Notes: generated from the sequence alone by a model not told the origin. 64,000 nt of DNA from Oculina patagonica (GCF_052425735.1 NC_135763.1:38316001-38380000), one strand, 5' to 3'. Shown: positions 22,601 to 34,469, counted from the first letter of the stretch. Numbers and translations: made by a program.

Positions 22601-25600
22601 AAGCACAAGGGAAAAGCTCTTCATGACGACATTTAGGATGCATTCTTCACAAGGGTAATAAAGACCCACTCACCAGAAGGTTCCTCCCTGGGCTTTTTCC
22701 TTGATTTCTGTAATCGTGTTTTTTGTGGTGGTGATGCTGAGTGTCCATTACTGCTAAGAGACGATGGATTTGACAAGTTTCTCTTGAAGCCCTGATCTGT
22801 GCTTCCAGCAATAAATGTGTCAGTGTCTCGGTATAACTGTGAGAGACCTTTCACCTAAAAAGAGAAAACCAGAATGAAAATCCTCAATAACCCAGTTTCA
22901 AGAAACCCCCGGCCAGAAGTATCTTTTTTGTTATTTTACACCAAAAACCCTACCACTCACTACCCCCTATATTCCATAGGGTTCCCCTGCAAGGGCTTGT
23001 TGTGCTCACACAAACCAAGATATATTACAAAGAAAAGAATGTATCAACAAATAAATTACAAACAGATTACTCTCACAAGGCATACATTTTAATCCCTATG
23101 AAAACACTTTTTACTACTAAACACTACTGGTAGAATTTTTTTAATTCTAATTTAGTTACTGTAGGTTTCTAAATAAAATCATCCTCAACCTCTTACATTG
23201 TTGAAAGAAAACGATGCATGTTCTTTTGGGCAAGATTCCTCAAATATTTATAAATTGAAATATTTTTATTCTCCTAATAAGTTTTGTGTGTTGTAGACTG
23301 GTTTCTTCTGATCTGAGCATTTACTGCTTCATTTGTCAGGAAAACAACAAAAAAAAATGCAACTTATTAGCGAAAAATTAAATTGGTTCTCAAGGCATAT
23401 TTTAAACATAGTGTCTAGATACCCGGCAGCCGGGAAGTGTTTTCAAAATACTACATACCCGGCAGTCTGAAATTATTCTAGAATTTCCACGGAAAAACCA
23501 ATCCAATCCTCCTCAAAACTATAGATCTTTGCTTAGAAATGCCAAGCGATTTCAATTATAGTTTTGGCTTTGTGTTTGAGGAAATTTTCGAGCTTGGGCA
23601 TACTACAAAATCTTGATTCTTCGACACTTAGAAAAAATTCGTACTCTGACTCCGGTGTCAACTCTTATAGAATAATTTCTACAAAAACTGAAGTTGAAAC
23701 CCTGCGAGAGTATTCGATATTTGCTGAGAAATGCGAAGCGATTCTAAATAATGTTTTGCTTTTGTTGTGGACGAATTCTCTTGGCTTCGGCGTACTATAA
23801 AATCCTCGACTCACGGGCACGGTTGTTCAAAAGACTAGATACCCGGCAGTCAAAAATTCATGAATAATCAATACATTCAATATCCACAAAAATGATCATT
23901 GAAACCTAGCTCCCGAGAGTATTTCAGTATTTCAATTTTCGGTCGGAAATACCAAGCGAGTTTTTACAATGTCAGTTTGGTTTTGCACAAATTGTACGAA
24001 CTTTATGTGACTCACGGGCACGATTTTTCAAAGACTACATACCCGGCAGTCAAAAATGCTTCCCGTTTTTCCATCAAAATTTCCATTTGAACCTGCTGAG
24101 ATGTCGGTGTAGAAATACCAAGCGATTTTCCAACTTAAGGCCTCAACAATTGCCTCGGCAAAGTAGTACAAAATAGCTACAAAACGCTTGAGCGTTCGGT
24201 GACGAAAGTCCGCCACCGATGTAACTTCCGGTGTGACACTTTAGTGGCGTGACAAAGGTGGCACGTGGTGTTGGTTTTCGCGCCAAAACGAACTCAGCGT
24301 TGGAAGCGACGAAGTTCTTCTGTGGGCTAAACGGCTTAGCGTTGGAAGCGACGAAGCTCTCGGTTTTCTTAGTTATTTGTAAGGTAAGTTAAACGTTTTA
24401 TCAATAAGGTAAGAAACCCTTCGCAAGTAACATATTAGCAGAGTTAGAAAGAGCGATTTGAAGCTACACGGAGCGAAAGAACATCAATGTTTTTGTCATT
24501 TCGTTGTAGTTTATCATTCATTGTCTTAAAAAACTGGGAATTTGACGCTCTGTGAAGCCCTAACTGATGGGGCATTTGACGGCCTACCAAACTTTTTGCA
24601 AAAAAGTCAAATGCCCGGGGGTTTGCACAGGGGATAGGAGCTTTGGAAATGACTGATAAACAAGAATGCGAAATGGGCTCACGCAGATAAGTCACGTAGT
24701 GTGTCCAGCAAGTGTATTCACAGAGACAACCTTGTTTCCTTTGAAATGTCACGTCACCTTTAAGTGCTATTGTGTATAAAATCAGTTTTATCTAGTTTAT
24801 CTAAACAGCAACAAATCGATCGCAGGCTTGGTTTAAGAACGATTGAAAGCTTGCAAAGCAAGCAATCTTTCGTTTACGGCGTGCGTGGGTTGGAGCGCAC
24901 GAAAGCGTGGGCCTGGAGAAGGAACAAAAATAGAGTGTCAGAACAGGGGAATGGAGTGGAGTTTTATGTTGCTGTTTTTCCATCCCCTTTGGGGTGTAAC
25001 AAGCAGGCTGTATGTTTACCACTACAACGTTTTTAATTCCGCGAGCTGTTTTATGAAATAGGAATTTACATAAAACTAGCATAAACTGCGGACATAAAAT
25101 TGTTTTTTCGGGCTGACAAAGCTATTGGGACTCTCAAGAAAAGATTCCCAGCTGGTGTTAGCGACGCTGAGTACGCGGTACTAGATAAGTGGGCAAAAGC
25201 TTGTTATTTAAAAGAAGATTTGTGATATATCCAGTGGTATGTAACTTTTGCGTACAACCTTCCCTTTCGCTTCAGGTGTCACTATGGATACAGTGTTGCA
25301 GGTTAGTTTGACATAATGAAGATTCCCCAATAGAGTCTTAACAGGGTTTTCAGATCCTACCCGGCGAAATTTCCCCTCATTCTCGTAAGCTTGTCCCGAT
25401 CCCGACCATTTATTGTTCGTAATCCCTTGCCGAAAAAAAAGGCCTTTCAGTGGGTGTATATTCTCTCCAAGCACTTTTCTTGAAATCTTTGAACACCGGC
25501 AATGCGGTTACTTCTTTCTTCCCGAGTAACTCGCACGTGGAAACATGGGTAACTCGTGTAAGTCCAAAAAGGCGATCACAACTTGATTTTTTTCTGTCAC

Positions 25601-28600
25601 TGGAACCGAATCCCGTCGCGTAAAATTGCCAATTCACGTATCCCGTTGTTAATTTCAATCCCGAATCTCGCTTCCTTTTCCATGTAAAACCCCGGATCTA
25701 GGCTTTCGAATAAGCCAAATCCGGATCCCGAAAAACCTATTGGGGACCCTGCAGTCGTCTCACCGAGCTCTGTTGCCATGAAGAAAGTGCTATTTATGGG
25801 ATAACCTACCAGACAACGCCCTTAATCTCACTGGGATGATGTGGTCAGTGAGAACCGGTCAGTCGGTCGATCCTAATTTCAGAGCTAGGAATTCCTTAAC
25901 AACTTTCCCTCTCATGAAACACACGAAGTTTCCATGTATGTGGTGGATCCACACCTTATGAACAACCTTATTGAACACTTATTGCACTAGGATATATCAG
26001 TTTCTAGCTGCGTTATTTGAAACGTAAAGTTCCACCTAGGGAGGGGGCAATCAGTCATGATCCATGATTACCCTTAGCGTGAATAATGAGAAAAGCTAAC
26101 GGGGAAAATGCACAAAATAAAAATACGTTTCTTCCGATATATGACTGAACATTCTCTAACGAAACGTACTATATAACCGAATTTGAATTATTTTATTTTA
26201 CCTCAACTTCTTTCAGGGTATTATTGTGAATAAAACATTTCACAATACTAACAGGCTTGTGGCATCCAGTATTCGTTTTCCACGCGTTGAACAGACTGGA
26301 CCGCAGACCCTCCGGGTGACGCTTAAAAACGCCACCAGCGTTACTTCACTGAAACGTATACCATCCAAGTCTAATTGCGAGGATATGCTGAAAACTCTTC
26401 GCCTCGGAAAATACGCCGCTGTATCCTGTAACCTTGGTACTTTCGATATCCCGTCGTTAGAAGCTATTCGAAATGTTCATGGCCTGTGGGAGGTAGCATA
26501 CAACGTTCAAAGGGAAAGGGTATGGCTGGCCAAAAAGGTGGTTCCTCCGAATGAAAAGTGTTCATATTCCAAAAGCGACATGGTCTCATTCGGAAATCTG
26601 ATATGGAATAATCCTGATGGTAATGCAGTTCTAGATTATGATCGTTCTCTGCTAGCTTCTGATTTGGCCCTGCTTTCTGGTACCCAGTGGCTCAATTTCT
26701 CTGTGCTGGCAACTACTGCAAAAATTTTGCAGTCAGAAGGCAGAGAGACAAGTGTTCTTATGTTGAATGAGCTTCTTCAAATGGATGGCGACAGTATTCG
26801 TCAAGTTATTCAAGAGCGCGGAAAGTACACGAAATACGTTGTATTCTTCGTAAACGTGGGCAAGGCAGCAGAGGTATTTTTTGGCAGCCCGAACAGACCA
26901 GGCAATCATTGGACACTTCTGTACATCGACCTAACAACAAATGAATGGTACTATTGTGATCCCTATGGTTGGGGTACGCCAAAGAATATGAAGGCAGCAC
27001 TCCTCCCCATAGTCGCCACGTTTCATGAAGAAATCAACTTAAAGCCCAGGCCCTTCAAAAGATGTATGCAAGGTTCCGTCCCGAGTGGAAGTCAAAACGT
27101 TGGTTCCTTAAAGAATCTTCCCATCCAAACATGTCCAAATGTCTGTGGTGTTATAGCTGCGATATTAGGAGGTATTGCCTCGGCAGCCCCAATTCTCTGG
27201 AGAGAAGTGTTCCTCAGCGATATGGCAGAGATGCCCGACGAGCTGAAATGGTTAATGTTCCCTTCCGTATATTCTGATTTCCTGAGGTGCTCACTTGCTT
27301 CGTGGCTCGTGAATGGAAAAGTTAATCTCGAAGCTTTAGGGATTCACAACACACCGAGTGGTCATACCGATCGTCCAGCTCAAGCCGAAGCAGCTAACGA
27401 AGAGCAGCAAGCCTCGCCTTCCAAAAGGAGGAAACTACGGTCAAAGTTAAAAAGAAGGCAACGAAAACACCAGACGCCGAGTTCCCAAGATAAGCGAGAT
27501 GCCACCCATGACAGACAAAAAGCTGATCCTGAAGTTATTCATGTAGACGATTGTGCGAGTCCCAAGTGTGTTGATGATAATCGTGAGAACCATCGCTATC
27601 GTAGTGATTTTGCGGCTCCAGCACGTAATGGAGATGATTCGGAGGATCTAACATGTCCCAACTATGTTGATGGCTTTAATGATAGGTCAGTGGCTGCTAA
27701 GTGTGACGGAAACAATTGCGAGGGTTCTCAGAATGTCGGCGATGGGTCAGCGGTTGATAAGGATGACAGAGATGATTGCGAGGGCTCACAGAACGCCAGC
27801 GATATGTCAGCGGTTGGTAAGGATGACGGAGATGGTTGCAAGGGCTCACAGAATGCCAGCGATATGTCAGCGGTTGATAAGGATGATGGAGGTGGTTGCA
27901 AGGGCTCACAGAATGCCAGCGATATGTCAGCGGTTGATAAGGATGATGGAGGTGGCTGCGAGGGTTCACAGGACGTCGGCAATGGGTCAGCGGTTGATAA
28001 GGATGACGGAGATGGGTCAGCGGTTGATAAGGATGATGGGGATGGGTCAGCGGTTGATAAGGATGATGGGGATGGGTCAGCGGTTGATAAGGATGATGGG
28101 AATGGGTCAGCGGTTGATAAGGATGACGGAGATGGGTCAGCGGTTGATAAGGATGATGGGGATGGGTCAGCGGTTGATAAGGATGATGGGGATGGGTCAG
28201 CGGTTGATAAGGATGATGGGAATGGGTCAGCGGTTGATAAGGATGACGGAGATGGGTCAGCGGTTGATAAGGATGATGGGAATGGGTCAGCGGTTGATAA
28301 GGATGATGGAGGCGATAAGCAGTGCGAGGCGGTCGGTGATGTAGGTGAAACTCACCGTCAGCAGAAAAATGGCTCGTTTTACCTGGGTCAGCGAATCTCA
28401 AGCACTGAGGAACTTGAAAGGCTGATAAAATCTTACGAAGTTGAAAACTTTTGTGAACTATGGAAAAAAGATGCCCGGTCATTAAAGGCAGCAGAGAAAC
28501 GAGTCCCAAAGAGGGTAGCATTGGCTGATCCGTCTTTACATTACTATTCTGTGTTGCTGTCATGCAAGTTCGGTGGAGAACCAAGGGAAAAAAAAGACAG

Positions 28601-31600
28601 GATTAAAAACACAAAAACGTTTCGTCAGGGGTGCCCCTTTGAAATATATATCTCTTTAAGCAATGATGGTCAAGCGCTCCAAGTGGGTCGTATTCAAGAA
28701 AGTCACAACCATGACTTAACGAAAGAACTGTACGAGCGTCTACCTCGGCAGAGAACAGTATCAGTTGAAGAAAAAAAAGAGATAGAAAAAGCCTTGAAAC
28801 TGAAGGTAAACTCCAAGTTGCTGCAGCAACAAATAGAACAATCCACTGGCAAGAAAGTCACCCTGAAAGATATCGCTAACATGAAGCAAAAGACAAGAAA
28901 AGATATCAACAAAAACGACCTTGACAGCGTTATTGCCTACCTTCAGCAACAGCATGGATCCATTGCGGAAATTATAATTGACGAGGAAAACAATTTCAAG
29001 GGCATCTTCTACCAAGACGAGTACATGAAAGATATGTACCGCAAATTTCCAGAACTTATTCTTGTCGACGCAACCTACAAGTTGTTGGAACTAAGGATGC
29101 CGGTGTACCTAGTTCTCTGCATTGATGGTAATGGATTAAGCGAGATTGTCGCTATGTTTATCCTTGCCGATGAAACAAAGGCGGTAATTGAAGCAGCCGT
29201 TGGCGTTTTTAAGAAATTGAATCCTGCTTGTAGTGAAACAAAAGTAGTAATGTCCGACAAAGATTTTACAGAACGGGAAGCCTTTACCAACTGCTTTCCA
29301 GGTGCTTCATTGAATATCTGCCTGTTCCACACACTGCGCTCATTTAGAAGAGAAATAACTTGCGAAAAAATGGGAATAACGTCAGCCGAAAGGCATCGAT
29401 GTCTGGAGGTTCTGACTAATCTGGCCTATTCCAAATCACCAGAAGAATACGACAGGCGTTTGCAGGCACTGGATAACATCAGTTCGAGTGTAAAGGAGTA
29501 CATTGAACTAAACTGGATTCCCATAAAGGATCAGTGGGTGTCGTGTTTTAAAGATAGCACTCTTAACCTTGGTGAAAGAACAAACAATCGTTTAGAGACA
29601 ACTTTCGGAAAGATTAAGAGTGTCTGCAGCAAATACGCGAGCCTGATGCAGTTCTTCCATGAATTTTTTTCTGTTTTGGCATCTTTGAGAAGTGAACGGA
29701 ACCACCACTACTTGATGGCCTTGACGAGGCGACCAATAGACTACGGGAAGATGGATCACACACTACGGCTTTATTCAGACCTTTTGACTCCTTATTCTTT
29801 TAACTTTGTTCGTGAGCAGTTCACCAAAGCGAGCACCGTATCAACGATGTCCCAGACGGCAAAAGGAACCTTTGAAGTGGCTTCAACAAAAGGGCATAAT
29901 CCTGTCACAACAACGGCAGAGACATGTACTTGCTCATTTGCAAAACGCATGGGTCTCCCATGCAGACATATCTTTAGGGCAAGAACAATACTTCAGCTGC
30001 CCTTATTTGAGAGCAGCCTCCCCAGAAAGAGATGGACCAAGGACTTTTATACCACGCTGAAAGACTCACGATTTCCACCAGAAAACGTTGTGGCAGACGA
30101 TGGTCAAAGTGCTTTCACGGAGGACTGCCCTACACCGCAAGTGGTTTTGTCAGCACTAAACAAAGACGGGAAAGTTCTTTCCCAGGCCCAAAAATTTCGA
30201 AAAGGTTTGCAGGCTGGACAGATTATCGCATCGCTCACGAGTGAAGGTGGCATGGTGAGTTTCAGGAACAGATACCAGCTACTGCAAGACCTAATAAGTT
30301 ACTGGAAACTTGGCACTGAAGTAGTACTAACTCCACTAAAAAAGTCCAAAGCTCTTGAACATGCGATTCCTGAAGTCGAGTCAGTAGGTAACAGTGAGAT
30401 TGCTGAAGAGGATCAAAACGAATTAACCGATCAAGTTGTGTTTGAAAATCTTGATAATGGATTAGACATTCCTGAACAAATTAAAACTGAAACAAACAAA
30501 GGAGCTCTGAATGTCAAGTCGGAAATAACACAGGATTCGATAAATTGGCCAGACACTTCTGAAGAAATGAATATGGAAATCTCTGAACAGTCAATTAAAG
30601 GAGAATTTTGTCCTAAAATATCGGAGACTGATGTTAAAAGTGGGCCGGAAAAGCAAGGAAACTCAAATTATAGCTTCATAAATATGCCACCCAAAATTAT
30701 GAAACGGGGTCGACCTAAAGGCGCTGAATTGACAGTAGTTGGCCTTCCAAAATCCAAAAGACGCAAAGGAGACTCCAAGAAATTATTGCCGTTCAGCAAA
30801 CTCCCCCCGGATGAGAAATCCAGAATCATATTAGAGTGTCTCACCAGCCAATTGGCTGCCGCAGAAACTTTAAGTGGCAAGAGGTTGTTGAATGACAAAG
30901 ATGTACAGACCAACATCCACATGATAAGAGATACCATTAGAGACACTAGTAACGTTGATGTTCATCGTGTTCAGAAGTATTTTAACAATGACGGTTGGTT
31001 GGCTGTGCTAGGCGTTCTAAAGGAAAAACAAGATAGGGAATTTTTTTGCGAAGTTTGTGAAAAGGTCATATCAGACGACGTGCAAGATAGTATAGCTTGT
31101 GATCGATGCTTGTTATGGTTCCATTTTTCTTGTACATCGCTGAAAAAAAAGCCCAAAGTCCGCAACTGGTTTTGCAAGGGCTGCAAAGTCAAGTATCAAT
31201 AAGGCAATTGTCATAGAAATCACTTTTGTTCGCTGGAACCCGTGTAACAAACACATTACCATCTCTTTTACACTCTGTTCAAGTATCGTGGTGTTTCCAA
31301 AGATTTAAGACTGATTTCAAGGAATGTTTGTTCATTTAGAGAGTGACCGTCCTTACTGTATAGGTTTTGCACATAAAATGAACATAAGAACACTATTGCT
31401 TTTTCTTGAATCAGTCAAATGGACGAAAAAGAAACAGTTTTCTTTATGACGACTGCCTAACCTAGGAATACTAAGGTATAGGCTAAGGTATGTTTTTGTT
31501 ACTTAGTGAGTTCGTTAATCTCAAAACGTTTAAGGTGAACATTGTTATTATGTTTGATTGTTATTGTTATGTTTAAGGCGAACTTTAACTCAGTATTAAC

Positions 31601-34469
31601 TTGGAAATGTACACTGGCTTGCTCTAATAAAGTTTTAATATTTAACCCAGTTTTACCCAAGTTAGTAATCCATGATATACCGTAGAATTCCGAGAGAAAC
31701 GGTGCCCCGGAAAATTCACGGTTCCGCGAACGTAACGTGTATTTTACCTACCTATAGAACCCCGAAAGTACCGGCGCTTTGAAAAAGTCCTAAAAAGGGA
31801 TACCCTTATTAGTTACTAGGTCCAGTAGGACCCAGACCTAGATCAACAGAACCTCAACGCTATTAGGCACACGTTGCGAACTGATCTGAGAGTGGTCTCC
31901 TCACTGAGGGGACAAATCCCCTGAATTTGAAAAAATCTACTTGAGTGACTATATATAGAGGAACGCTTTGTATTTCTATTTAACCGAGAGCTTCGTCGCT
32001 TCCAACGCTATGTTACTTGCGAAGGGTTTCTTACCTTATTGATAAAACGTTTAACTTACCTTACAAATAACTAAGAAAACCGAGAGCTTCGTCGCTTCCA
32101 ACGCTAAGCCGTTTAGCCCACAGAAGAACTTCGTCGCTTCCAACGCTGAGTTCGTTTTGGCGCGAAAACCAACACCACGTGCCACCTTTGTCACGCCACT
32201 AAAGTGTCACACCGGAAGTTACATCGGTGGCGGACTTTCGTCACCGAACGCTCAAGCGTTTTGTAGCTATTTTGTACTACTTTGCCGAGGCAATTGTTGA
32301 GGCCTTAAGTTGGAAAATCGCTTGGTATTTCTACACCGACATCTCAGCAGGTTCAAATGGAAATTTTGATGGAAAAACGGGAAGCATTTTTGACTGCCGG
32401 GTATGTAGTCTTTGAAAAATCGTGCCCGTGAGTCACATAAAGTTCGTACAATTTGTGCAAAACCAAACTGACATTGTAAAAACTCGCTTGGTATTTCCGA
32501 CCGAAAATTGAAATACTGAAATACTCTCGGGAGCTAGGTTTCAATGATCATTTTTGTGGATATTGAATGTATTGATTATTCATGAATTTTTGACTGCCGG
32601 GTATCTAGTCTTTTGAACAACCGTGCCCGTGAGTCGAGGATTTTATAGTACGCCGAAGCCAAGAGAATTCGTCCACAACAAAAGCAAAACATTATTTAGA
32701 ATCGCTTCGCATTTCTCAGCAAATATCGAATACTCTCGCAGGGTTTCAACTTCAGTTTTTGTAGAAATTATTCTATAAGAGTTGACACCGGAGTCAGAGT
32801 ACGAATTTTTTCTAAGTGTCGAAGAATCAAGATTTTGTAGTATGCCCAAGCTCGAAAATTTCCTCAAACACAAAGCCAAAACTATAATTGAAATCGCTTG
32901 GCATTTCTAAGCAAAGATCTATAGTTTTGAGGAGGATTGGATTGGTTTTTCCGTGGAAATTCTAGAATAATTTCAGACTGCCGGGTATGTAGTATTTTGA
33001 AAACACTTCCCGGCTGCCGGGTATCTAGACACTATGTATTTTAAAACCAGTAACCATTTGTTATTAATTATTTAAGAGCAATATTTTTTTCCTTAGCAAC
33101 CATCTACATTTAAATTATTTTATTAAAAGAGCAACTTTGTTTGATCAGGTCTGTTTTATTAATTCAGACTGCTGAAAAATTTGTTTTTGAGAAATATGAC
33201 TTATTTTATTTCAATTTAAAGTTTATTTATTTATTGATATCTTTCCGAACAAATCCTTCATGTATTTACAACATGCAGGTGTTTAATTCTTTCAAACAAT
33301 ATTTGTCCGCATAATAAATTAAACCGATCCGGTTTCACTGTTTTGGAAGTTTACGTGATATAGCAGCTTTTTTATTTCTACACAAAAATCTTGCCCGGAC
33401 ATTATACTCCAAACTTTGTCCGGAAATTTAATAAACGCGTCATAAGGACTGAGCTTGTAGTGATTGAATAGTGTTAGTTGAAGCGGATAATCCTATCTAA
33501 GCCGGAAAATCGTACACAAAGCATATTATGTTCATATAGCGATTCTCGAAATTTTGTAGGAATGTTTCTTTGCACGATTATCCACTCACTTACCTTGGTT
33601 CCTTCCAAAGTGCGCAGTTCTTTAACTGAGTACTTCAACATGTCAGAAATGTCCTTTAAAACGTCTTCGAAGCTTTTTACCGTCTTTCTGTTTAACAAGA
33701 TTTTACATTTCTTGTTTTTATCGTACTCACTGAGGATTGTTATAACCCGCGGTTTCGGATTTCCGTCAGAATTGCTCCCGCCAAACTTCGAATCTCTACT
33801 TGACGAAGACAACGAAGAGCCATCAGACAAAGTTTCGACATCAAGCGAGCGAGGCTTGTCTTTCTGCTTTTGACCGTAGTTCACATTTTTTATAAGCTGG
33901 TCTCCTGAAGAACAGATATAATGCCTTCCATCCTCTAACTGGTTAATAGTTGTAATTGAACTTCCACCAGGCGAAAAAACATTTCTCACTCCGTACGGAA
34001 GTGGAATCGCTTTTGATAGGTCTTCAACAATGGTGTCGAAAGATCGATATCGTTGTCTAGTCACAACCATCTCAACACCTTTGAAATGTTTATCCCCATT
34101 ACGGTAAAACGTAACTCTTTTCACAGCATTTACTCTGCTTTTTCGCTGATCTTTTCCTGCTGGATCAGAGCTAGAATTATTAGGAAATTCTGGAGGATTT
34201 CGTGGCCGCCGAGGGTCGCCAACAGGAGGGTTTCCAATGGCTTCGTTATTCCTTGCTGGTAAAGGAATGCGACTATTAAGTTTACCATCTCTCTTCTGAG
34301 GTCTTCTTTCTCTTACATCTCTATCAATTTCAGGAAGTCTAACGTGATCGTTGTCCTCCAAATCGCTGTTACTGTCGGCAGGAAAAGGCCGTCCGCGATG
34401 ACTAGCGCCATTCGGCAATGCCCGACGCTGTTGTTGAAAATTACTGTAACCGCGTCCGCGATAAGACAT
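13690..34469 (-). CDS. Doublecortin-domain echinoderm microtubule-associated protein-like (DCX-EMAP/EML family), ~20 exons
   Basis: Exon 33594-34469 encodes DCX domains (VTFYRNGDKHFKG...RYRSFD; ILLNRKTVKSFE). Exons 22674-22854, 22409-22541 and 21829-21978 give the HELP motif (KLQLSWV|YGYHGKD...HYTGHADDI). WD40 exons run from ~21227 to ~14992; the last exon ~13690-14395 (LITTGSRDVCILQW) has a low-complexity tail. Internal exon borders are approximate. Confidence 0.9.
18245..18986. mobile_element. Foldback/MITE-like element with ~125-bp diverged inverted repeats, within a larger repeat-like intronic block (~17850-19860)
   Basis: TTACTTTTGCCG...TTCGATACAAAGTTCCCAACTTCGGCCCGA (~18245-18370) is the inverted counterpart of ~18858-18986. 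Confidence 0.65.
21522..21744. mobile_element. MITE with TAGACTG termini and 9-bp TSD (AcademH-like)
   Basis: GTTTGGCAC|TAGACTGT...ACAGTCTA|GTTTGGCAC. Confidence 0.85.
21979..22408 (-). other. U12-type (minor spliceosome) GT-AG intron in the HELP motif of DCX-EMAP
   Basis: 5'ss GTATCTTT; branch site TCCTTGAC ~12 nt before the AG; no polypyrimidine tract; phase 2 in W-V|Y-G-Y. Confidence 0.85.
22095..22350. repeat. Degenerate ~20-bp tandem repeat (CCACCTTAGAGAG core) inside the U12 intron
   Basis: About a dozen imperfect CCACCTTAGAGAG-like units. Confidence 0.7.
23407..24434 (+). repeat. Left TIR of the MULE
   Basis: Mirror of 32009-33036; internal repeats TA(G/C)ATACCCGGCAG (x4) and AGCGTTGGAAGCGACGAAG (x2). 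Confidence 0.95.
26217..31202 (+). CDS. MULE transposase fusion: Ulp1/C48-like protease - acidic repeat - WRKY/GCM1-type Zn finger - DDE - SWIM - AT-hook - PHD
   Basis: Protease motifs QWLN, NHWTLLYID, YYCDP, PIQ..NVCG; DNA-binding domain C..G...GCPF...HNH; DDE core LVDATY / MSDKD / CLFH / TNNRLE; SWIM CTC...LPCRH; KRGRPK; PHD CEVC..CDRC..WFHFSC..WFCKGC. In-frame acceptor ttctttcag| at 26216. Confidence 0.93.
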   Translation, partial: GIIVNKTFHNTNRLVASSIRFPRVEQTGPQTLRVTLKNATSVTSLKRIPSKSNCEDMLKTLRLGKYAAVSCNLGTFDIPSLEAIRNVHGLWEVAYNVQRERVWLAKKVVPPNEKCSYSKSDMVSFGNLIWNNPDGNAVLDYDRSLLASDLALLSGTQWLNFSVLATTAKILQSEGRETSVLMLNELLQMDGDSIRQVIQERGKYTKYVVFFVNVGKAAEVFFGSPNRPGNHWTLLYIDLTTNEWYYCDPYGWGTPKNMKAALLPIVATFHEEINLKPRPFKRCMQGSVPSGSQNVGSLKNLPIQTCPNVCGVIAAILGGIASAAPILWREVFLSDMAEMPDELKWLMFPSVYSDFLRCSLASWLVNGKVNLEALGIHNTPSGHTDRPAQAEAANEEQQASPSKRRKLRSKLKRRQRKHQTPSSQDKRDATHDRQKADPEVIHVDDCASPKCVDDNRENHRYRSDFAAPARNGDDSEDLTCPNYVDGFNDRSVAAKCDGNNCEGSQNVGDGSAVDKDDRDDCEGSQNASDMSAVGKDDGDGCKGSQNASDMSAVDKDDGGGCKGSQNASDMSAVDKDDGGGCEGSQDVGNGSAVDKDDGDGSAVDKDDGDGSAVDKDDGDGSAVDKDDGNGSAVDKDDGDGSAVDKDDGDGSAVDKDDGDGSAVDKDDGNGSAVDKDDGDGSAVDKDDGNGSAVDKDDGGDKQCEAVGDVGETHRQQKNGSFYLGQRISSTEELERLIKSYEVENFCELWKKDARSLKAAEKRVPKRVALADPSLHYYSVLLSCKFGGEPREKKDRIKNTKTFRQGCPFEIYISLSNDGQALQVGRIQESHNHDLTKELYERLPRQRTVSVEEKKEIEKALKLKVNSKLLQQQIEQSTGKKVTLKDIANMKQKTRKDINKNDLDSVIAYLQQQHGSIAEIIIDEENNFKGIFYQDEYMKDMYRKFPELILVDATYKLLELRMPVYLVLCIDGNGLSEIVAMFILADETKAVIEAAVGVFKKLNPACSETKVVMSDKDFTEREAFTNCFPGASLNICLFHTLRSFRREITCEKMGITSAERHRCLEVLTNLAYSKSPEEYDRRLQALDNISSSVKEYIELNWIPIKDQWVSCFKDSTLNLGERTNNRLETTFGKIKSVCSKYASLMQFFHEFFSVLASLRSERNHHYLMALTRRPIDYGKMDHTLRLYSDLLTPYSFNFVREQFTKASTVSTMSQTAKGTFEVASTKGHNPVTTTAETCTCSFAKRMGLPCRHIFRARTILQLPLFESSLPRKRWTKDFYTTLKDSRFPPENVVADDGQSAFTEDCPTPQVVLSALNKDGKVLSQAQKFRKGLQAGQIIASLTSEGGMVSFRNRYQLLQDLISYWKLGTEVVLTPLKKSKALEHAIPEVESVGNSEIAEEDQNELTDQVVFENLDNGLDIPEQIKTETNKGALNVKSEITQDSINWPDTSEEMNMEISEQSIKGEFCPKISETDVKSGPEKQGNSNYSFINMPPKIMKRGRPKGAELTVVGLPKSKRRKGDSKKLLPFSKLPPDEKSRIILECLTSQLAAAETLSGKRLLNDKDVQTNIHMIRDTIRDTSNVDVHRVQKYFNNDGWLAVLGVLKEKQDREFFCEVCEKVISDDVQDSIACDRCLLWFHFSCTSLKKKPKVRNWFCKGCKVKYQ
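27715..28312 (+). repeat. Coding tandem repeat: 60-bp units then 30-bp units encoding (SAVDKDDG[D/N]G)n
   Basis: GATGGGTCAGCGGTTGATAAGGATGATGGG repeated ~11 times, preceded by 60-bp variants. Confidence 0.95.
32009..33036 (-). repeat. Right TIR of the MULE
   Basis: Reverse complement of 23407-24434 (coordinate sums are constant at 56443). Confidence 0.95.

Follow-up and report, generated by a model that had tools for sequence, protein, structure and literature searches.

The genomic DNA analysed here is a 64,000-nucleotide stretch of the Oculina patagonica assembly (GCF_052425735.1, NC_135763.1:38316001-38380000), which we refer to at its full length as the window and in which positions are counted from the first letter. 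Between 23407 and 33036 the window contains a 9,630-bp transposable element of the Mutator superfamily, that is, a Mutator-like element (MULE), in which one long open reading frame (ORF) combines an N-terminal Ulp1/SENP-like cysteine protease, a transposase and a C-terminal PHD finger. A preliminary description made from the sequence alone had presented the element as a young giant Mutator transposon and had suggested that its protein might act against silencing. The structural part of that description is upheld by the analysis, with a correction to the start of the gene, and the functional part is weighed below against several alternatives.

Structure of the element and its reading frame

The element begins with CATAGTGTCTAGATACCCGGCAG, and both of its ends were read directly. 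An inverted-repeat search returned two arms of 1029 nt, 23406-24434 and 32009-33037, that are 100% complementary; after reading of the termini the true ends were placed at 23407 and 33036, which gives terminal inverted repeats (TIRs) of 1,028 bp at 23407-24434 (+ strand) and 32009-33036 (- strand). Directly outside lie the two matching copies of a perfect 9-bp target-site duplication (TSD), TATTTTAAA, at 23398-23406 and 33037-33045, likewise read from the sequence. Mutator elements are recognised by TIRs accompanied by a TSD of about 9 bp, and this element has both; with a MULE-type core that scores above the Pfam cut-offs, it belongs to the Mutator superfamily and, within it, to a ZSWIM1/3-FAR1-like clade, here in a coral-type cnidarian genome. 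The identical TIRs, the perfect TSD and the superfamily assignment given in the preliminary description are all confirmed.

Each TIR contains four copies of the motif CTA(G/C)ATACCCGGCAG in the same orientation, located in the left TIR at 23415, 23451, 23835 and 24035. Against an expectation of 0.04, the window has 8 occurrences of the 10-nt core TACCCGGCAG, all of them within the TIRs. These repeats are candidate binding sites for the transposase.

The + strand is open from 26226 to 31202, which corresponds to 1,658 amino acids counted from the listed GTG and 1,671 codons from stop to stop, in agreement with the stop-free frame of ~1,660 codons noted earlier. The chance of a stop-free run this long at the base composition of the element is ~3e-47. 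All domains of the protein are in this single frame, as had been claimed, and the frame is kept in relatives.

The N-terminal protease

The Ulp1/SENP-like protease of clan CE occupies residues 46-375 (26361-27350, + strand) and is recognised by profile, fold model and catalytic set. The catalytic set comprises H228 (codon 26907-26909) in NHW, D245 (26958-26960) in YYCD, and Q301 (27126-27128) and C307 (27144-27146) in PIQTCPNVCG, the same motifs that the preliminary description had singled out; in the numbering of the protease piece the four residues are His183, Asp200, Gln256 and Cys262. An exhaustive HMMER search returned 373 cluster representatives at E <= 0.001, and a family profile (A1) was formed from 50 relatives aligned with the query, that is, 51 sequences. 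H228, Q301 and C307 are present in 51/51 of these sequences and D245 in 50/51. The spacing is 17 from His to Asp and 6 from Gln to Cys, equal to that in yeast Ulp1, whose residues we take to be H514/D531 and Q574/C580. A candidate Trp clamp, W155 and W229, is kept in 36/51 and 45/51 family sequences, respectively.

Searched on its own with phmmer, the protease sequence has no match at E <= 10 among the PDB sequences, and 14 of the 51 family members match Pfam C48 singly (E <= 0.01). The A1 profile matches Ulp1 (1euv) at E 3.5e-8, SENP1 at 1.8e-6 and ChlaDub1 at 5e-6, and its alignment places the family's GnHW...YcDS on SHW...YVDS of Ulp1 and the family's RWL on RRWLND. An AlphaFold2 model built on A1 has a mean pLDDT (predicted local distance difference test) of 92 and a pTM (predicted template-modelling score) of 0.88. 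In a Foldseek search of the model against the PDB, Ulp1, NEDP1, SENP2, SENP1 and SENP5 come out on top with E 2e-8 to 1e-5, probability 1.00 and template-modelling scores by target of 0.63-0.76 for the top group, with 0.71-0.76 for the first four, and poxvirus I7 and the bacterial CE effectors rank far below them; the search of AlphaFold-DB Swiss-Prot gives the same picture, with cellular Ulp1/SENP-type proteins on top. By profile and predicted fold the N-terminal domain is a member of C48 at both clan and family level, consistent with the C48 fold proposed for it in the preliminary description. It is a divergent, transposon-associated branch of these proteases, enlarged by one more subdomain at the N-terminus and by a helical extension at the C-terminus. 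The invariance of the catalytic residues, the conservation of the Trp pair and the purifying selection described below argue for an active enzyme.

Linker, transposase and chromatin-reader domains

Downstream of the protease, a basic stretch, SPSKRRKLRSKLKRRQRKHQ (residues 397-416; 27414-27473, + strand), is conserved in P0001, a 1,641-residue protein from the Tara Pacific metagenome, and is likely the nuclear localisation signal that had been predicted for the protein. The acidic linker that follows is encoded by an in-frame tandem array of 30 bp x 19.3 at 27733-28311 (+ strand), consisting of DGSAVDKDDG repeats and found by Tandem Repeats Finder, which detects no other array in 23000-33500; the linker is of low complexity, with 72 Asp in 270 residues.

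The DNA-binding domain, a zinc finger of the FAR1/WRKY-GCM1 type, was identified by Pfam at residues 720-832 (28383-28721, + strand), where ZSWIM3_N (residues 720-829) matches above its cut-off at E 2.6e-10 and FAR1 at E 0.0015, under its cut-off. The MULE core with its RNaseH-like fold of the DDE type follows at residues 906-1037 (28941-29606, + strand). It is matched by Pfam ZSWIM1-3_RNaseH-like (PF21056; residues 906-1028) at E 8.5e-37, with 126.4 bits against a cut-off of 27.2, and by MULE (PF10551; residues 945-1037) at E 1.6e-13, with 51.4 against 27.6 bits. The motifs VDATY (D948, 29067), MSDKD (D1011, 29256), CLFH (the CxxH at 1032-1035) and RLETT (E1124, 29595) can be read in it. By their resemblance to known motifs, D948, D1011 and E1124 together with CxxH fit the layout of a MULE DDE triad, and the complete DDE that the preliminary description had reported is retained on this basis. 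The transposase core matched nothing meaningful among the PDB sequences, and no integrase (rve) match appeared in the Pfam scan of the protein. For the SWIM zinc finger of the preliminary description there is a candidate, CTCSFAKRMGLPCRHIF, at residues 1234-1250 (29925-29975, + strand); the CxCx(n)CxH pattern was read there directly, but the Pfam SWIM score of 16.0 bits is below the cut-off of 19.6.

The AT-hook and the C-terminal PHD finger that were also part of the original claim are both found. The AT-hook core KRGRPKGAE (residues 1493-1501; 30702-30728, + strand) is unchanged in two relatives, L007 and L008, whose surrounding region differs by 25-45%. The PHD finger (residues 1608-1653; 31047-31184, + strand) is of the C4HC3 type, with zinc ligands C1608, C1611 ... 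CxxC ... H1633 ... C ... CxxC, and scores 29.5 bits against 24 on Pfam PHD (PF00628). Its nearest solved relatives are TAF3, ING2/ING1 and Yng2 (E 2e-6 to 1e-5). The PHD fingers of TAF3 and the ING proteins read H3K4me3. In the alignment with TAF3, F1606 falls on the Trp ahead of the first Cys and W1631 on the Trp of WYH, two positions that we take to be cage residues in the TAF3/ING structures; in three relatives the residue two before the first Cys is aromatic (F, W or F) and the Trp of WFH is kept. The alignment suggests that this PHD finger may read marks of active chromatin.

Start of the gene and its transcript

The start of the frame requires correction: there is no ATG ahead of the conserved N-terminal residues (...RFPRVEQTGPQTL...), and upstream of 26217 the frame runs without an ATG into a stop at 26184. 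The possibility that the GTG at 26226 is a lost ATG start was rejected, as relatives share this GTG and have it preceded by a conserved splice acceptor; the initial 'M' of the relatives in the database is a GTG called under the bacterial code. The acceptor, ...cttctttcag|G at 26216|26217, is kept in L007 (a relative at 61-68% protein identity) and in a second relative, L031 (84% identical); in both, the codons after it are also the same (G/D-I-I-V-N-K). In the absence of an in-frame ATG, the conserved acceptor points to a short upstream start exon. A putative one, ATGGATACAGTGTTGCAG (MDTVLQ), is located at 25285-25302 (+ strand), in frame with the acceptor and followed by the donor GTTAGT; its ATG, its 18-nt frame and a GT(A/T)AGT donor are kept in L031 in surroundings that are only ~70% identical. 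In the 68% relative L007 the start exon was not found by DNA similarity, and only the acceptor region aligned. The putative intron at 25303-26216 ends in a polypyrimidine tract and CAG.

Judging from these conserved signals, the gene probably consists of a tiny start exon spliced to a single 5-kb exon at 26217-31202 (+ strand; ~1,661 codons plus stop), which is colinear with P0001, and the protein likely starts MDTVLQ|GIIVNK... with ~1,667 residues in all. A candidate polyadenylation signal, AATAAA, was read at 31626-31631 (+ strand), ~420 nt past the stop codon, and one contig from a possibly-RNA sequencing run stops nearby at 31632, which is not decisive.

Relatives of the fusion protein and selection

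P0001 is colinear with the window protein over its full length at 61% identity, and P0003 (1,692 residues) is also colinear and retains the AT-hook and PHD finger. The same genome holds a second, older MULE family at C5:7313641-7318239 (L030:1641-6239; 45% and 57% identity), with protease, DNA-binding domain, MULE, SWIM and PHD in this order in one frame interrupted by a single TAG in the protease; no TIRs were detected within 10 kb of it. The order of protease followed by MULE transposase recurs in Stylophora PFX12216.1, annotated 'ZSWIM1', in Aplysia XP_005091692.1 and in Patiria XP_038070595.1; in the latter two the protease is 26% identical and C2H2 fingers replace the FAR1-type domain. 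MULE proteins from cnidarians, a mollusc and an echinoderm keep the protease in the N-terminal position at only 23-26% identity.

Ratios of nonsynonymous to synonymous substitution rates (dN/dS) relative to the gene of P0001 are 0.19 for the protease, 0.06 for the DNA-binding domain, 0.13 for the SWIM block, 0.155 for the AT-hook/PHD block and about 0.5 for the acidic linker, where constraint on the protein is weakest; with dS at ~1, these values are approximate. The value of ~0.19 indicates that the protease is under purifying selection. On this sequence comparison, the fusion of protease and transposase is both selected and old.

Copies, age and mobility

In the 529-Mb assembly at least 74 matches to the TIRs have 95-100% identity. 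The coding regions have no second near-identical copy in the assembly, the next best reaching 45-57% protein identity, and at least 35 deletion derivatives, 97-100% identical, are found at distinct loci. The twenty short copies that were fetched (1.5-3.7 kb) are all internal-deletion derivatives of the window element; their breakpoints lie inside the TIRs or adjoin them, and some deletion types recur at separate loci. Perfect 9-bp TSDs in AT-rich targets accompany 13 of the 19 short copies that were checked. The deletion derivatives are evidence that the family has moved recently. Since the element's own 1,028-bp TIRs do not differ at a single position, its insertion was very recent, and the youth attributed to it by the preliminary description, which had also called for this genome-wide count, is borne out. 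The element is probably still active, and it is plausible that the window copy is the source of transposase for the family.

Proposed mechanism and alternative explanations

The explanation that we favour, with moderate confidence, is that the element is an autonomous and recent MULE whose selected protease aids transposition as a chromatin-tethered isopeptidase acting on a ubiquitin-like modifier. The protein carries, in this order, the protease, the basic stretch and acidic linker, the FAR1/WRKY finger, the MULE DDE core with the SWIM motif, the AT-hook and the ING/TAF3-like PHD finger. Its DNA-binding domain may recognise the copies of CTA(G/C)ATACCCGGCAG that the 1-kb TIRs contain; cutting and pasting of the element by the DDE core would then generate 9-bp duplications in AT-rich targets, and the transposase would mobilise in trans the internally deleted copies, of which there are at least 35. 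The protease would act in trans on a ubiquitin-like modifier, most likely SUMO and possibly NEDD8 or ubiquitin. The PHD finger and the AT-hook are envisaged as bringing it to chromatin, where it might free the transposase itself, or factors of chromatin, repair or silencing, of their modifiers and in this way favour transposition.

Several observations weigh against this explanation. The N-terminal 355 residues on their own do not reach the Pfam cut-off for Peptidase_C48 (PF02902; E 0.2, 11.9 against 20.7 bits). The start exon and its splice are deduced solely from conserved signals. Among public reads, 25660-31659 is covered by one poly(A) RNA read and by zero small-RNA reads, the latter from a run in which the presence of the organism is unproven; over the same interval, two runs of guessed RNA status give short, patchy contigs with no joints. 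The insertion site lends nothing to the chromatin part of the scheme either. An ORF with two doublecortin (DCX) domains (Pfam E 7e-24) lies at 33474-34469 on the - strand, with its stop codon facing the right end of the element at a distance of ~430 bp. This single insertion, beyond the stop of the DCX ORF and not at an obvious promoter, does not support PHD-driven targeting to promoters. Finally, the fold leaves SUMO, NEDD8 and ubiquitin undistinguished as substrates.

With regard to the substrate, we give SUMO about even chances. Since NEDP1 and bacterial deubiquitinases match as well, the fold does not single out one substrate. A complex prediction of the protease domain with this genome's ubiquitin scored 0.77, with one control at 0.58, and is not used as evidence. 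A related alternative, which we hold possible though doubtful, is that the protease is an active isopeptidase on ubiquitin or NEDD8, not SUMO, and shields the transposase or repair factors from degradation. NEDP1/SENP8 structures are fourth and fifth by Foldseek at E 8e-8, the deubiquitinase/deneddylase ChlaDub1 is matched by the profile at E 5e-6 over the stretch with the catalytic His and Asp, the deubiquitinase SseL is among the fold matches, and OTU deubiquitinases occupy the equivalent place in other transposons (PMC2836005); the best matches by both profile and fold are nevertheless SUMO proteases, Ulp1 and then SENP1/2.

The self-contained anti-silencing transposase of the preliminary description is a narrower version of the explanation we favour: placed on chromatin by the PHD finger and AT-hook, the protein would take SUMO off repair factors or off the nearby silencing machinery, be it that of SUMO-dependent heterochromatin or the piRNA-guided one. 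We consider this specific version unlikely. If it were true, the anti-silencing activity would keep the element and its dependants, at least 35 in number, competent for transposition. Together with the match of the A1 profile to giant ORFs of this genome that carry a chromodomain, it would then point to a general counter-defence acquired repeatedly by DNA transposons of marine invertebrates.

Improbable, in our assessment, is the alternative that the protease cleaves in cis, in the manner of polyprotein processing in adenovirus, poxvirus (I7) and African swine fever virus, and frees itself and a transposase of conventional size. It could draw on the long, poorly constrained and disordered linker that parts the protease from the transposase, on several Gly-Gly sites in the linker of the window copy, on the presence of mpox I7L, a viral clan-CE processing enzyme, among the weaker fold matches, and on one family member each that matches Pfam Peptidase_C5 and C57. 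The Gly-Gly sites, however, are absent from the linkers of P0001, P0009, P0111 and P0121, and cleavage at a conserved Gly-Gly was rejected because no such site is conserved in the relatives; the self-cleavage that the preliminary description had raised as its own alternative thus finds no support here. Both by sequence and by fold, cellular Ulp1/SENP/NEDP1 proteins match best, not viral processing enzymes. Moreover, members of the protease family are located C-terminally in other giant ORFs of this genome and alone in a TIR element, and plant MULEs have the protease as a separate gene (PMC2836005). Such varied arrangements fit an activity in trans better than obligatory cleavage in cis.

We attach very little weight to the suggestion that the protease is a captured passenger, as in Pack-MULEs, or a catalytically dead binding module. 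Capture of host fragments by MULEs is on record in the available text of PMC8277862, and the domain is too divergent for a Pfam call in the window protein; but the conservation of the catalytic His, Gln and Cys in all 51 family sequences and of Asp in all but one, the dN/dS given above, and the N-terminal position kept between phyla at 23-26% identity speak against it. That the ORF is a domesticated host gene similar to ZSWIM1/ZSWIM3 and not a mobile element can be practically dismissed: the top Pfam models are ZSWIM1-3 families, relatives in Stylophora and Paramuricea are annotated ZSWIM1/3 and the genome has a single coding copy, but the perfect 1,028-bp TIRs, the 9-bp TSD and the dozens of near-identical deletion derivatives with TSDs of their own refute it.

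Relation to known systems

Proteases of this kind have been noted on transposons before. With reference to Repbase Reports, the available text of PMC2836005 (Bao, Kapitonov, Jurka 2010) names hydra, lancelet, Arabidopsis, maize, rice and melon as species whose Mutator transposons encode Ulp1; the paper describes Hydra Ginger1 transposases with Ulp1 or OTU domains, including one family with Ulp1 and PHD, and already raises, as a speculation, that the ubiquitin/SUMO pathway takes part in transposition. Oomycete Cryptons carry C48 peptidases (PMC3212892), and fusions of rice ULPs with MULE domains are noted in PMC12903978. Protease-fused animal MULEs are not mentioned in three broad MULE surveys (PMC6446971, PMC13359780 and bioRxiv 2021.09.26.461848); among the literature searched, PMC2836005 is the only record of animal MULEs that carry a protease. 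Since Ulp1 in Mutator and Ulp1 with PHD on Ginger1 were both reported in 2010, and the Stylophora, Aplysia and Patiria proteins share the architecture, the novelty that the preliminary description had left in question is modest. Repbase may already list the combination of N-terminal protease, ZSWIM1/3-type core and AT-hook/PHD tail.

The MuDR-type elements of Hydra magnipapillata and Branchiostoma floridae are likewise animal Mutator elements with Ulp1/C48, one of them cnidarian; they are known here through the citation of Repbase Reports 2008/2009 in the available text of PMC2836005, and the window protease misses the Pfam threshold for C48. Ginger1 (e.g., Ginger1-9_HM, PMC2836005) shares with the window element a single polypeptide of DDE transposase, Ulp1 and PHD in a cnidarian DNA transposon. 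It is defined by a Gypsy-integrase-type DDE with the motifs YPYY, H2C2 and GPY/F, followed at the C-terminus by an OTU or Ulp1 domain, and has TIRs of 44-270 bp, whereas the window element has a MULE core and an N-terminal protease. Rehavkus, a MULE-related group with PHD in the transposase, a 9-bp TSD and a minisatellite before the 3' TIR (PMC6446971), also shares the PHD finger; by this description the window element is set apart, as its sole tandem array is in the coding linker and not beside the 3' TIR. KAONASHI and the other ULP-carrying MULEs of Arabidopsis, melon, rice and maize resemble the window element in being Mutator elements with a selected Ulp1-like protease, as far as the available text of PMC2836005 describes them. 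KAONASHI-type elements are plant elements, whereas the protease of the window element is fused in frame to the transposase and resides in an animal, which places it outside that group. In plants the ULP gene is said, in the work of Hoen et al. 2006 and van Leeuwen et al. 2007, to be a separate ORF that is often found in elements without a transposase.

Among cellular proteins, yeast Ulp1 and human SENP1, SENP2 and SENP8 (MEROPS C48) have the same fold, the same His-Asp-Gln-Cys order and spacings, and both the Trp after the catalytic His and the Trp of RWL in common with the window protease. The window protease differs from them in its identity of only 11-16%, its extra N-terminal subdomain of ~90 residues, a longer insert between Asp and Gln, the C-terminal helical extension and its embedding in a transposase. 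Vertebrate ZSWIM1/ZSWIM3 and plant FHY3/FAR1 share the arrangement of DNA-binding domain, RNaseH-like core and SWIM; they are immobile host genes without TIRs and, judging by Pfam domain names, have no protease or PHD.

The question why Ulp1 or OTU proteases are so common on eukaryotic transposons dates from about 2006-2010, and we know of no experiment that has answered it. The element is an unusually clean test object, with an intact coding copy, perfect ends, a single long exon, an identifiable C307 and a chromatin-reader tail that is separable, and its non-autonomous copies of 1.5-2 kb are usable as reporters. The analysis also delineates a clade of proteases below the Pfam threshold that corals, a mollusc and an echinoderm have at the N-terminus of MULE transposases; such proteins are now labelled 'ZSWIM1/3' or 'uncharacterized', and their annotation could be improved. 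The current picture of transposon biology is unchanged by these results until the substrate of the protease is found.

Additional observations in the same genome

A TIR element of ~3.6 kb at C9:29057682-29062427 (L003:1682-6427) has arms of ~650 bp that are 98% identical, the right one holding a nested insertion of ~1.07 kb. Its sole long ORF (L003:3592-4596, 334 residues from ATG) encodes the protease only, 36% identical to that of the window element and with H, D, Q and C intact, which makes it an animal analogue of the transposase-less ULP-carrying MULEs of plants. It is single-copy in the assembly apart from one 85%-identical fragment on C4.

Giant multi-copy ORFs (frames of 1,659-1,910 residues) combine a chromodomain with a C-terminal Ulp1-like protease that matches A1 at E 1e-9 to 1e-13; they are located at C4:35234660-35239639 (L045:2660-7639), C1841:154164, C1841:115840, C1:19335916 and C6:27100578, and no transposase was recognised by Pfam in the first ~1,000 residues. 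An ORF of 2,133 residues at C12:24222104-24228505 (L029:1104-7505) has an N-terminal protease of the same family, 24% identical, and a SAP domain near its C-terminus; neither a recognisable transposase nor TIRs within 10 kb were found, and it could be a host gene or an unrecognised mobile element.

One non-autonomous copy of the window family, at C8:19377463-19381151, contains ~1.6 kb of internal DNA foreign to the autonomous element, which may have been captured or may stem from a nested insertion. Many decayed fragments of the same protease/MULE family with multiple stops are clustered on C4 at ~29-43 Mb, which looks like a transposon graveyard.

A scan of the genome with Pfam Rad60-SLD returned polyubiquitin, ubiquitin-like arrays, a Rad60-type SLD exon and a ubiquitin-ribosomal fusion. 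The scoring regions include large clusters of tandem ubiquitin-like repeats at C11:19.21-19.35 Mb and 21.6-21.8 Mb and also on C1232, with frames of up to 843 residues, which are distinct from the ordinary polyubiquitin gene at C6:2511546-2512898.

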